A stretch of DNA of 64,000 nucleotides from Octopus sinensis (Eukaryota): the NCBI RefSeq assembly GCF_006345805.1, contig NC_043023.1, forward strand, positions 5,828,001 through 5,892,000, written 5' to 3'. A program made the translations under genes and the position numbers. Below are positions 51,701-54,700 of this stretch, one piece after another (positions within the stretch are counted from its first letter, which is position 1; each line of letters starts with the position of its first letter). Under the pieces are notes generated by a model. The model did no database searches. It had not been told where the DNA came from and saw only the letters and a list, made by a program, of their open reading frames with translations.

Positions 51701-54700
51701 CATCGACTTAATCCATTTGTCTGTCCTTGTTTGTCCCCTCTGTGTTTAGCCCCTTGTGTAATAAACTAAGTACCAGTTACGCACTGGGGTCGATGTCATC
51801 GACTTAATCCGTTTGTCTGTCCTTGTTTGTCCCCTCTGTGTTTAGCCCCTTGTGGGCAGTAAAGAAATAGATAAACTAAGTACCAGTTACACACTGGGGT
51901 CGATGTAATTGACTTAATACCTATGTCTGTCCTTGTTTGTCCCCTCTGTGTTTAGCCCCTTGTGGGTAGTAAAGAAATAGGTATGAGGGAAGGTATGATC
52001 AAAGATTGTGTTCCAGTGTGACCACTGCTCAAACTAATTATACAATGTAATTATATGAAAATCATCTTTATAATTTATTGTATCATTTATTTATTGTTTT
52101 CTCTCTCATAATTCTGTCTTTCTCATTTTCTTCCTGTCACCGTGGCTACCATTCTAACTTCTTCCTTTCTTCGGTTATTTCAATTGATTGTTTTCTTGGA
52201 CCCTTCATTTGGGGTATCTTCCTCTAAACAACCAAACAAACGATACTCAAATGCATCCCAATTAACTGAATTCAAAAGACGACGAAGTGGAGATATTCAC
52301 AGCGCGACAAATAAACAGCTTCTACAATTTTGTTGACCGACTGCCCAAGTTGTACGGTAAAAACAGCCACAACCAAACTTTGCACCTGCAACTAGTGCCA
52401 CACTTCCTCTCCTCCTTCCTCCCTGTATCCTCACTATTAGTACTACTACCACTGTTTCAATGCAATTTTTTTGCTGTAGATGTTTTCTTATTCCAATGTC
52501 AACTGATGTTGCACATACATCTACCAGCACCAATGAAAATCTGCAGGTTTTCATTTTTTTAACCCCTTCTCCCATGACCTCTACTACATCAAGGTGCAGC
52601 AGTTATTTACACTTGGGGATGGTGATTTTAATTCAGACCTTTCAATGGGTGGGGGGATCAGAAGGTACCCTTTTTTAAAAAATATTACTTACTAGTATTT
52701 CAAATAGATAGCCCTTCAAACTGACATTTGCTCCTCAGAGGTTCATTTTTTCCCTTCAAACTGATATTTTGCCCCTTAAATTTACACTAAACTCTTCAAT
52801 GAGACATTTTGGCCTGCAAGATGACATTTTGCCTTTCAAACTGATATTTTGCCCCTTAACCCTTTAGTGTTCAGATTATTCTATCAAACATAATGCCTGT
52901 TGATTCCCATTGATTTGAATTAATCATGCATTATCTCATATCTTCAAGATCTTGATGGTGTAATTACCTAATGTAGAATAACATTGTAGGGTAGGTGTGA
53001 GAGCCTGGATCTGGTCAGTTTGAACATAAAACAGATTAGCTATTTTGGCCAGATATGGCCGGTTTAAATACTAAAGGGTTAAACTGATATATACTTTGTA
53101 AACTGATATTTATCTTGCTTACCCATGTTTCACCCTCTAAAGTAACATTTGCCCTGCAGACTAAAATCTGCAAAAGAATTTGAATTTTTTCCTGTGGAAT
53201 GATATTCACCCAGAAACTGATATCCTATCTTGTAAAATGATTGATATCCTATCTTGTAAAATGATTGATATCCTATCTTGTAAAATGATTGATATCCTAT
53301 CTTGTAAAATGATTGATATCCTATCTTGTAAAATGATTGATATCCTATCTTGTAAAATGATTGATATCCTATCTTGTAAAATGATTGATATCCTATCTTG
53401 TAAAATGATTGATATCCTATCTTGTAAAATGATTGATATCCTATCTTGTAAAATGATTGATATCCTATCTTGTAAAATGATTGATATCCTATCTTGTAAA
53501 ATGATATTCACTAGTAAATTGAAATATGCTCACACAAACTGACATTTTCCCTGGGAACTGATTTTTACCCTAAAAATTTACATTTGTCCTGCAAACTGAA
53601 ATTTAAAATGGAACAAATAGAATGGGATTTGCTTTGAGCCAATCCTACCAGCAAGAGACCTGTTGTTGGACCAAGAACGAGATGGTTGGACAATATCCAT
53701 AGTCTTGGAAAGCCACCTGGAAAATGTAATGAGGGTTGTTTCTGATAGGACTCTATGGAGGAGGCACCTAAGGACTCTATCCACATGACCCTTCCAGAAA
53801 TAGTGGCCAGATAAGATTGAAGGTGGTGAGCTGGCAGAAACGTTAGCTCACCGGGCGATATGCTTTGTGGTATTTCGTCCACTGCTGCATTCTGAGTTCA
53901 AATTCTGCTGAGGTCAACTTTGCCTTTCATCCTTTTGGGGTTGATAAATTAAGTACCAGTTACACACTGGGGTCGATGTAATTTACTTAATCCGTTTGTC
54001 TGTCCTTGTTTGTCCCCTCTATGTTTAGTCCCTTGTGGGCAATAAAGAAATAAGAAACTGAAAGAAGACCATTGTGTATGTGTATACATTTGTTTTTTGT
54101 TCATCTCCCACCACTGCTTCACAGCCAGAGTTGGTTTGTTTACATCCTTGTAACTTAACAGTTCAGCATAAGAGTCTTACAGAATAAGTACAAGGTTTTA
54201 AAAATTAAAATAAATACTGGGGTCAATTGTTTTTTGACTAAAAAGCCCTTTAAGGCGGTGCTCCAGCATGGCTGCAATCCAATGACTACAACAAACAAAA
54301 GATATAAGAAGATTCCACATAAATAAAATTTTCACTGATAATTTAAATTTTTACTCGAGAAAATGGAATTAAATTTCAATAAAAATTAATTTAATCATGG
54401 GAAGTAAAACTAAATTAGTCAGCATAATACCTGGGTATAATACCTTGATTGGTTTCTGGTAGCGGTTCCCTTAATGAGTCTTAAGTACCTTCGTCAAAAG
54501 ACACTTCATTTAGTATTGCAGCTGCTATTACCTGCCGATGGCATCACCATCATTAACATTAGCATCGTCACCTCGTTATCATCACTGCAACTACCTCCTT
54601 CATTCACTTAGATAGACACCGCCACCACCACCACTATTACTACTATCACCACCATACCACCATCATTCACATAAACACCTCTTCCACCACTACTACTACC

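Follow-up and report, generated by a model that had tools for sequence, protein, structure and literature searches.

Human exons preceded by a zone of at least 100 nucleotides (nt) without an AG dinucleotide are enriched for cassette-type alternative splicing, and a zone of this kind points to a candidate distant branch point (Gooding et al. 2006, Genome Biol 7:R1; PMC1431707); the exons whose distant branch points are known experimentally are all alternative (PMC1431707). Splicing also diversifies the cytoplasmic tails of L1-type adhesion molecules. In L1CAM, exon 27 (RSLE) is an alternative cassette of 12 nt, or four residues, in the middle of the tail, and in Drosophila the Nrg167 and Nrg180 isoforms carry alternative 3′ terminal exons. 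Near the membrane, the L1 segment KGGKYSV is an ezrin-binding site (PMC3737756), and the segment NRGGKYDVHDR of Drosophila Nrg, which also has FIGQY, is a juxtamembrane binding site for FERM proteins (PMC4384726). Here we describe a 78-nt exon of the neuroglian gene of Octopus sinensis, found in a 64,000-nt stretch of contig NC_043023.1 (positions 5,828,001 to 5,892,000, forward strand; hereafter the window, whose own numbering is used throughout). We conclude, with a probability of about 0.85, that positions 52279-52356 are a genuine alternatively spliced cassette exon, with weak splice signals, a stretch of about 260 nt upstream that is free of AG, and probably a distant branch point.

The neuroglian gene spans the window, with immunoglobulin (Ig) and fibronectin type III (FnIII) exons on the + strand throughout. 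Eighteen exons were mapped, the first at 681-783 and the last at 55518-55582, and their spliced translation, including the 78-nt cassette, agrees over all 993 of its residues with residues 224-1216 of XP_036370302.1, isoform X1; no such exact agreement exists with the O. vulgaris protein, and the window is accordingly O. sinensis. When an 826-residue ectodomain assembled from the exons was used as a protein query, the top match was 'neuroglian isoform X2 [Octopus sinensis]' (99% identity); after O. sinensis came proteins called neuroglian from O. bimaculoides, cuttlefish, gastropods and bivalves, and the best relatives were named neuroglian or NrCAM. For comparison we used the orthologous loci of O. 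bimaculoides (L001) and O. vulgaris (L002), and isoform X1 of O. sinensis (P0123).

The cassette is preceded by AAAAG and followed by GTAAAA at 52357. It contains no stop codon and reads 26 residues when the G carried over from 49437 is used, its last G then combining with the GC at 55518 to restore a glycine. The junctions 49437^52279 and 52356^55518 are precisely those that regenerate XP_036370302.1. Inclusion places the 26 residues between the two glycines of KKNMG/GSKTY, just inside the membrane; in skipped forms 49437 is spliced straight to 55518, which yields KKNMGGSKTY. Both forms are annotated. The exact peptide occurs in three gene models of O. sinensis and is missing from two (Table 1). 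For O. bimaculoides, the models A0A0L8H183, A0A0L8H2Q2 and XP_014776254 contain the cassette, whereas A0A0L8H1C5, A0A0L8H1M8 and XP_052833792, the current RefSeq model, do not; the single O. vulgaris model retrieved is free of it. Across isoforms, the cassette pairs freely with a second cytoplasmic cassette, GHRYGTSVTDRLTKETS.

A preliminary description of this DNA had announced the exon as hidden. It is not: the cassette is already listed in public gene models (RefSeq and UniProt), and its existence is no discovery. The core of that description of the exon stood up well. A stop-free segment of 78 nt and phase 1-1 does fit exactly between the flanking exons, splits the GGSKTY motif and is an alternatively included cytoplasmic exon. 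Its fit to the reading frame, in contrast, was dropped as evidence for an exon, because the same 6-kb intron holds 165 phase-compatible, stop-free segments running from an AG to a GT, and the frame argument alone therefore carries no weight.

Table 1. Positions (in window coordinates) of the cassette exon, its neighbours, its candidate splicing signals and the adjacent repeat block
Feature	Positions	Strand	Description	Gene models
Upstream constitutive exon	49294-49437	+	Transmembrane helix and basic juxtamembrane stretch; ends ...KKNMG with one base, G, carried over; donor GAG/gtaagt	Matches XP_036370302.1
Transposable-element block in upstream intron	50849-51980	.	No counterpart in O. bimaculoides; ends 37 nt before the AG-free zone	
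AG dinucleotide exclusion zone	52017-52276	+	260 nt without AG; flanking AGs at 52015-52016 and 52277-52278 (262-nt gap)	
Pyrimidine-rich tract	52098-52196	+	65-90% C+T in 20-nt windows; between 82 and 180 nt before the acceptor	
Candidate distant branch point TTCTAAC	52152-52158	+	Branch A at 52157, 121 nt from the 3′ splice site; invariant in three Octopus species	
Second candidate branch site	52224-52229	+	CTAAAC in O. sinensis, exact CTAAC in the two other species; distance to the 3′ splice site about 47-50 nt; not followed by a pyrimidine tract	
Acceptor AG	52277-52278	+	Weak context, ...gaattcaaaag/ACG; adjacent pyrimidine content 0.44, lowest of 17 acceptors	
Cassette exon A	52279-52356	+	78 nt, phase 1-1	In O. 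sinensis X1-X3; skipped in X4 and X5
Donor GTAAAA and first 33 intron bases	52357-52389	+	Sole donor among the 17 to lack G at +5; 33 bases invariant in three species	
Downstream constitutive exon	55518-55582	+	65 nt, phase 1 to 2, not symmetric	Matches XP_036370302.1

Among the gene's 17 exons the cassette was an outlier on three counts: its AG-free zone, the pyrimidine content at its acceptor and the +5 position of its donor. The weakness that had been ascribed to its AAG and GTAAAA sites was borne out by the last two (Table 1). Only 45-60% of the final 60 nt before the acceptor AG are pyrimidines, and the pyrimidine-rich tract lies well upstream of them. The AG-free zone, which had been delimited correctly to the nucleotide, is longer than that of any other of the gene's 17 acceptors in the window, whose median zone measures about 72 nt. 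In mononucleotide shuffles of the 260 nt, 6.7 AGs are expected, and only 46 of 200,000 shuffles contained none. Five AG-free runs in the window are longer, all of them in microsatellites or in other simple or tandem repeats. The zone was retained in each of the three Octopus species (O. sinensis, 262 nt; O. vulgaris, 260 nt; O. bimaculoides, 253 nt), and in all of them it exceeds the 100 nt that define the distant-branch-point class.

The only CTAAC invariant in the three species lies within the 65-90% pyrimidine tract, at -121 in O. sinensis and -110 in O. bimaculoides. This TTCTAAC, which the preliminary description had put about 120 nt from the first AG (121 nt as measured), appears to be the best branch-point candidate, with the CTAA(A)C near -50 as the alternative. 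The spliceosome would most likely assemble on the upstream branch point and pyrimidine tract and then take the first AG downstream. Such an architecture would make inclusion depend on trans-acting factors, which in turn could explain why both isoforms exist.

In these features the octopus cassette is, as judged from sequence, an ordinary member of the class of alternative exons with distant branch points. It shares with the exons of Gooding et al. (2006) an AG-free zone of more than 100 nt, a cassette that is both included and skipped, a pyrimidine tract and a candidate consensus branch motif far upstream, and an acceptor with no adjacent tract. It differs in that the class was defined in human exons, whereas the octopus case is a cephalopod gene with a candidate branch point known from sequence alone; moreover, conservation of the octopus zone does not exceed that of the intron around it.

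The cassette itself was conserved to an unusual degree. It is identical to that of O. sinensis at 76 of 78 positions in O. bimaculoides (97.4%; one synonymous change and one N-to-S change) and at 77 of 78 in O. vulgaris (98.7%; one synonymous change). O. sinensis and O. bimaculoides show 87-90% identity in alignable intron sequence, and at that rate the probability of two or fewer differences in 78 nt is about 0.004-0.013. Over the three species the changes amount to two synonymous and one conservative substitution with the frame kept, as expected under purifying selection. The acceptor AG, the GTAAAA donor and the start of the downstream intron were invariant. Comparison with relatives had been proposed as a check on the exon, and in both O. 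vulgaris and O. bimaculoides the exon, its splice sites, the AG-free zone and TTCTAAC were all kept.

Several points weigh against this reading. Inclusion and skipping are documented at the level of public gene models (NCBI and JGI). Besides the CTAAC found about 47-50 nt from the acceptor in two species, a third and still nearer candidate, TTAAC or TTAAT, lies 13 nt from the acceptor AG, and the branch point may thus be closer than -121. RNA folding that could bring the -121 site nearer to the AG was looked for, and no significant structure emerged (z = -0.65). The AG-free zone is 87.3% identical between species as compared to 88-90% for background intron, so constraint on it beyond the avoidance of AG is weak; even that avoidance is suggestive but marginal, as 22 random substitutions would create no AG with a probability of about 0.06 by simulation. 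Raised conservation of the flanking intron, considered as a mark of regulation, is accordingly unsupported for the zone (87% versus 88-90%). At the level of protein, the interpretation given below rests on a low-confidence model and a low-information motif, and since this paralogue has neither PF13882 nor FIGQY, it is doubtful that GGSKTY can be equated with the GGKY site of L1 and Nrg.

Some of these same points would be explained if the exon were real and alternative but used a conventional or moderately distant branch point, either the CTAA(A)C at about -50 or the TTAAC at -13, with the AG-free zone a by-product of a G-poor, pyrimidine-rich intron. The perfect CTAAC of O. bimaculoides and O. 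vulgaris favours the former site, and a by-product would be expected to show what the zone does show, namely few Gs (25 in 260 nt), no more conservation than background intron and only marginal AG avoidance across species. However, the -50 site of O. sinensis is an imperfect CTAAAC and is not followed by a pyrimidine tract (pyrimidine content 0.47), while the -13 site is nearer than branch points usually are and is followed by purines. Nor does the composition of the zone readily account for its lack of AG, given how few shuffles of that same composition were AG-free, or for a length held at 253-262 nt in three species. We regard this nearer placement of the branch point as possible, though it would leave the exon and its alternative use as we describe them.

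The distant-branch-point cassette that we favour was also set against two explanations that deny meaningful alternative use. That the exon is effectively constitutive in vivo, its skipped isoforms being rare splicing noise caught by annotation, could find support in the fact that the cassette is more conserved than its neighbour exon at 55518-55582 (97% versus 86%). We find it very unlikely: skipped forms are annotated in three species, and include the sole O. vulgaris model and the current RefSeq model of O. bimaculoides; no other exon of the gene has weaker splice signals; and cuttlefish orthologues function without such an insert. Least credible of all is a pseudo-exon added by prediction pipelines for the sake of frame and not spliced into mRNA at meaningful levels, for despite the many frame-compatible decoys in the intron, the weak splice sites, the evidence at the level of gene models and the cassette-free O. 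vulgaris model, two independent annotations (JGI for O. bimaculoides, in UniProt, and NCBI for two species) give both forms, and identity between species is 97-99% in the cassette as compared to about 88% in introns, with substitutions biased to silent sites and both splice sites invariant.

The neighbouring constitutive exon at 55518-55582 corresponds to 49419-49482 of L001, with 86% nucleotide identity, and its peptide reads GSKAHIDNSSDFRDDIGYVNDG in O. bimaculoides. The cassette itself contains six CpG dinucleotides in 78 nt, five of which are retained in O. bimaculoides. Its observed/expected ratio for CpG is 1.53, whereas the window has a ratio of 0.50 and the other exons one of 0.53. An origin of the cassette in a repeat was rejected: the region 51980-52855 matches only its orthologous place in L001 and L002 and is single-copy, unlike the short interspersed nuclear element (SINE)-like units just upstream.

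A search of isoform X1 against Pfam returned I-set/Ig_3 (five stretches scored), fn3 and FN3_DSCAM_C, with nothing but Ig and FnIII domains. A transmembrane helix was predicted, giving an L1-type ectodomain with a single membrane span. No match to PF13882 (Bravo_FIGEY) was found by Pfam in isoform X1, and no F[IVL]GxY motif occurs in the window. On this domain content the gene is an L1-type Ig/FnIII adhesion molecule, a molluscan paralogue without FIGQY. The octopus tail is rich in Y, D and G and ends in TTFV. Similar Y/D/G(R)-rich tails, ending in SSFV, STFV, DTFV or SSSFV, occur in gastropod and bivalve relatives (among P0005-P0029), and PF13882 is present in arthropod, vertebrate and other molluscan L1-type matches (e.g. 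P0045, P0053 and P0067). The distribution suggests that molluscan L1-type proteins form two paralogues, with and without PF13882; with an L1-type ectodomain but without this cytoplasmic domain, the octopus gene belongs to the paralogue with the different tail.

The octopus juxtamembrane GGSKTY resembles the FERM-binding GGKY segment loosely, and in cuttlefish the corresponding residues read KSMQASKTNV. With the cassette included, GSKTY would lie 26 residues further from the membrane, and this shift could, speculatively, alter the binding of FERM proteins or adaptors. Single-sequence AlphaFold2 predicted a helix whose limits coincide with those of the cassette (model residues 49-73), at low confidence (predicted local distance difference test, pLDDT, 55-68). 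The amphipathic moment of the cassette peptide is 0.64, a value matched by 115 of 20,000 shuffles. In the membrane-proximal tail scanned, from RRRESY to GYVNDG, a YxxPhi motif occurs only in the cassette, as YNFV or, in O. bimaculoides, YSFV. We therefore offer only as speculation, from modelling, that the cassette may be an amphipathic helix bearing a YxxPhi motif and may act as a switchable membrane-proximal module.

Analogies had been drawn to the alternative tails of Nrg and to the L1 RSLE exon, and these proved loose: alternative cytoplasmic tails are indeed common to all three, but the correspondence goes little further. Like the octopus cassette, RSLE is an alternative cytoplasmic cassette in an L1-type molecule, and in both cases inclusion adds a putative motif of the low-information YxxPhi type (YRSL in L1; YNFV or YSFV in octopus). 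The octopus cassette is much the longer, however, lies adjacent to the membrane rather than in mid-tail and has no sequence similarity to RSLE, which sits in a Bravo/FIGQY cytoplasmic domain that the octopus protein lacks. For its length, position and unrelated sequence, the cassette was rejected as a homologue of the RSLE exon. The octopus gene and Nrg both encode invertebrate L1-type molecules whose cytoplasmic tails vary through alternative splicing, and both have a PDZ-type C-terminus (TYV in Nrg180, TFV in octopus). They differ in the kind of exon used, terminal in Nrg and an internal cassette in octopus, and in the tail itself, where the NRGGKYDVHDR FERM segment and FIGQY of Nrg (PMC4384726) contrast with a loose GGSKTY and no FIGQY.

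Beyond Octopus, cuttlefish orthologues have no insert at the position of the cassette; they include a protein derived from transcripts that occurs on 110 contigs. When a 66-residue query covering the cassette region was run exhaustively with phmmer against 1.84 billion cluster representatives, only the Octopus cluster and one weak match were recovered. The latter, P0133 (E = 4e-4, 28% identity, summed over six repeats), is an insect allergen-repeat-like protein and was judged a chance match. A word-indexed protein search gave no match for a 95-residue peptide of the transmembrane segment and cassette or for the 288-residue tail, both of which occur exactly in P0001/P0123; these were false negatives, and negatives from that search with short or low-complexity queries are not to be read as absence. 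On present data, from protein clusters and cuttlefish transcripts, the cassette appears to be restricted to Octopus. It is tempting to see in it a young exon of the octopus lineage, born from intronic sequence and captured by way of a distant branch point, that gives a switchable amphipathic helix and tyrosine-based sorting signal beside the membrane, in functional convergence with vertebrate L1 RSLE; taken as a whole, we consider this scenario unlikely.

A similar arrangement was found in the abalone Haliotis rubra, where neuroglian-like X1 and X3, as compared to X5, have a short alternative cassette (GIRVSGKDTSDSEHEPY or GVSGKDTSDSEHEPY) between the membrane-proximal segment and an exon with the conserved ...DFGPEPRGYNNDYY motif. 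The abalone insert (P0005-P0007) is unrelated in sequence to the octopus cassette, and use of the same intron in the two is suggested by protein alignment only.

The locus shows how a real alternative exon of a cephalopod can be flagged from raw sequence by weak splice sites in combination with a displaced pyrimidine tract and a long stretch free of AG, and it extends a class of exons defined in humans to a mollusc. With 78 nt, two candidate branch sites and three species for comparison, the cassette offers a tractable system for the study of splicing regulation in a neural adhesion molecule of octopus. It could also be used to ask whether a membrane-proximal insert alters coupling to the cytoskeleton or to endocytosis.

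Other features of the gene and of the window were recorded. The second cytoplasmic cassette, GHRYGTSVTDRLTKETS (17 residues), is used independently of the first and is found at 60831-60880 of L001 and at about 73480 of L002. In O. vulgaris it lies about 14 kb past the exon equivalent to 55518-55582, and in O. sinensis it would thus fall outside the window. Together with a 10-residue NAEGYNAEGY variant it yields at least five O. sinensis isoforms, whose tail exons lie past the end of the window (>64000).

The O. bimaculoides locus is rich in assembly gaps, such as the run of N at 25655-27063 of L001. The exon for the sixth Ig domain (Ig6; KTRIEQRPF...FLTVR, window 18372-18659) falls within a gap of that assembly, and all O. 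bimaculoides models (P0002, P0126-P0130) have in its place an unrelated peptide derived from intron or repeat. One such filler peptide, of 21 residues, matches intronic sequence at 15545-15679 of the window.

Repeats are abundant in the introns. At the transposable-element block upstream of the cassette, the alignment with O. bimaculoides leaps from 50849 to 51980 of the window over only about 80 nt of L001. Inverted repeats of 35 nt (50848-50882 and 51385-51419) enclose an element in this block. The SINE-like units, each about 110 nt long and arranged in tandem at 51542-51980, have many dispersed copies in L001 and L002. Within the element, an open reading frame remnant at 51043-51249, with no match in Pfam, appears to be mariner-like from a 13-residue motif. 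Further mariner-like transposase remnants lie at 57708-58368, in the intron downstream of exon 55518-55582; the Pfam search of the mariner-like remnants gave no matches.

Remnants of reverse transcriptase from retrotransposons without long terminal repeats (non-LTR) occur in introns on the strand of the gene at 33174-35946, 38095-38481 and 2832-3290; RVT_1 was matched at E = 5.6e-18 for 34630-35280, and the other two remnants were weaker. Downstream of the cassette, at 53146-53577, a 24-nt unit is present in about 13-18 perfect tandem copies and is AG-free for 301 nt (53212-53513). The longest AG-free runs of the window are held in very long, degenerate TA/TG/CA microsatellite blocks at 31800-33400, 36000-36760 and 62400-62780.

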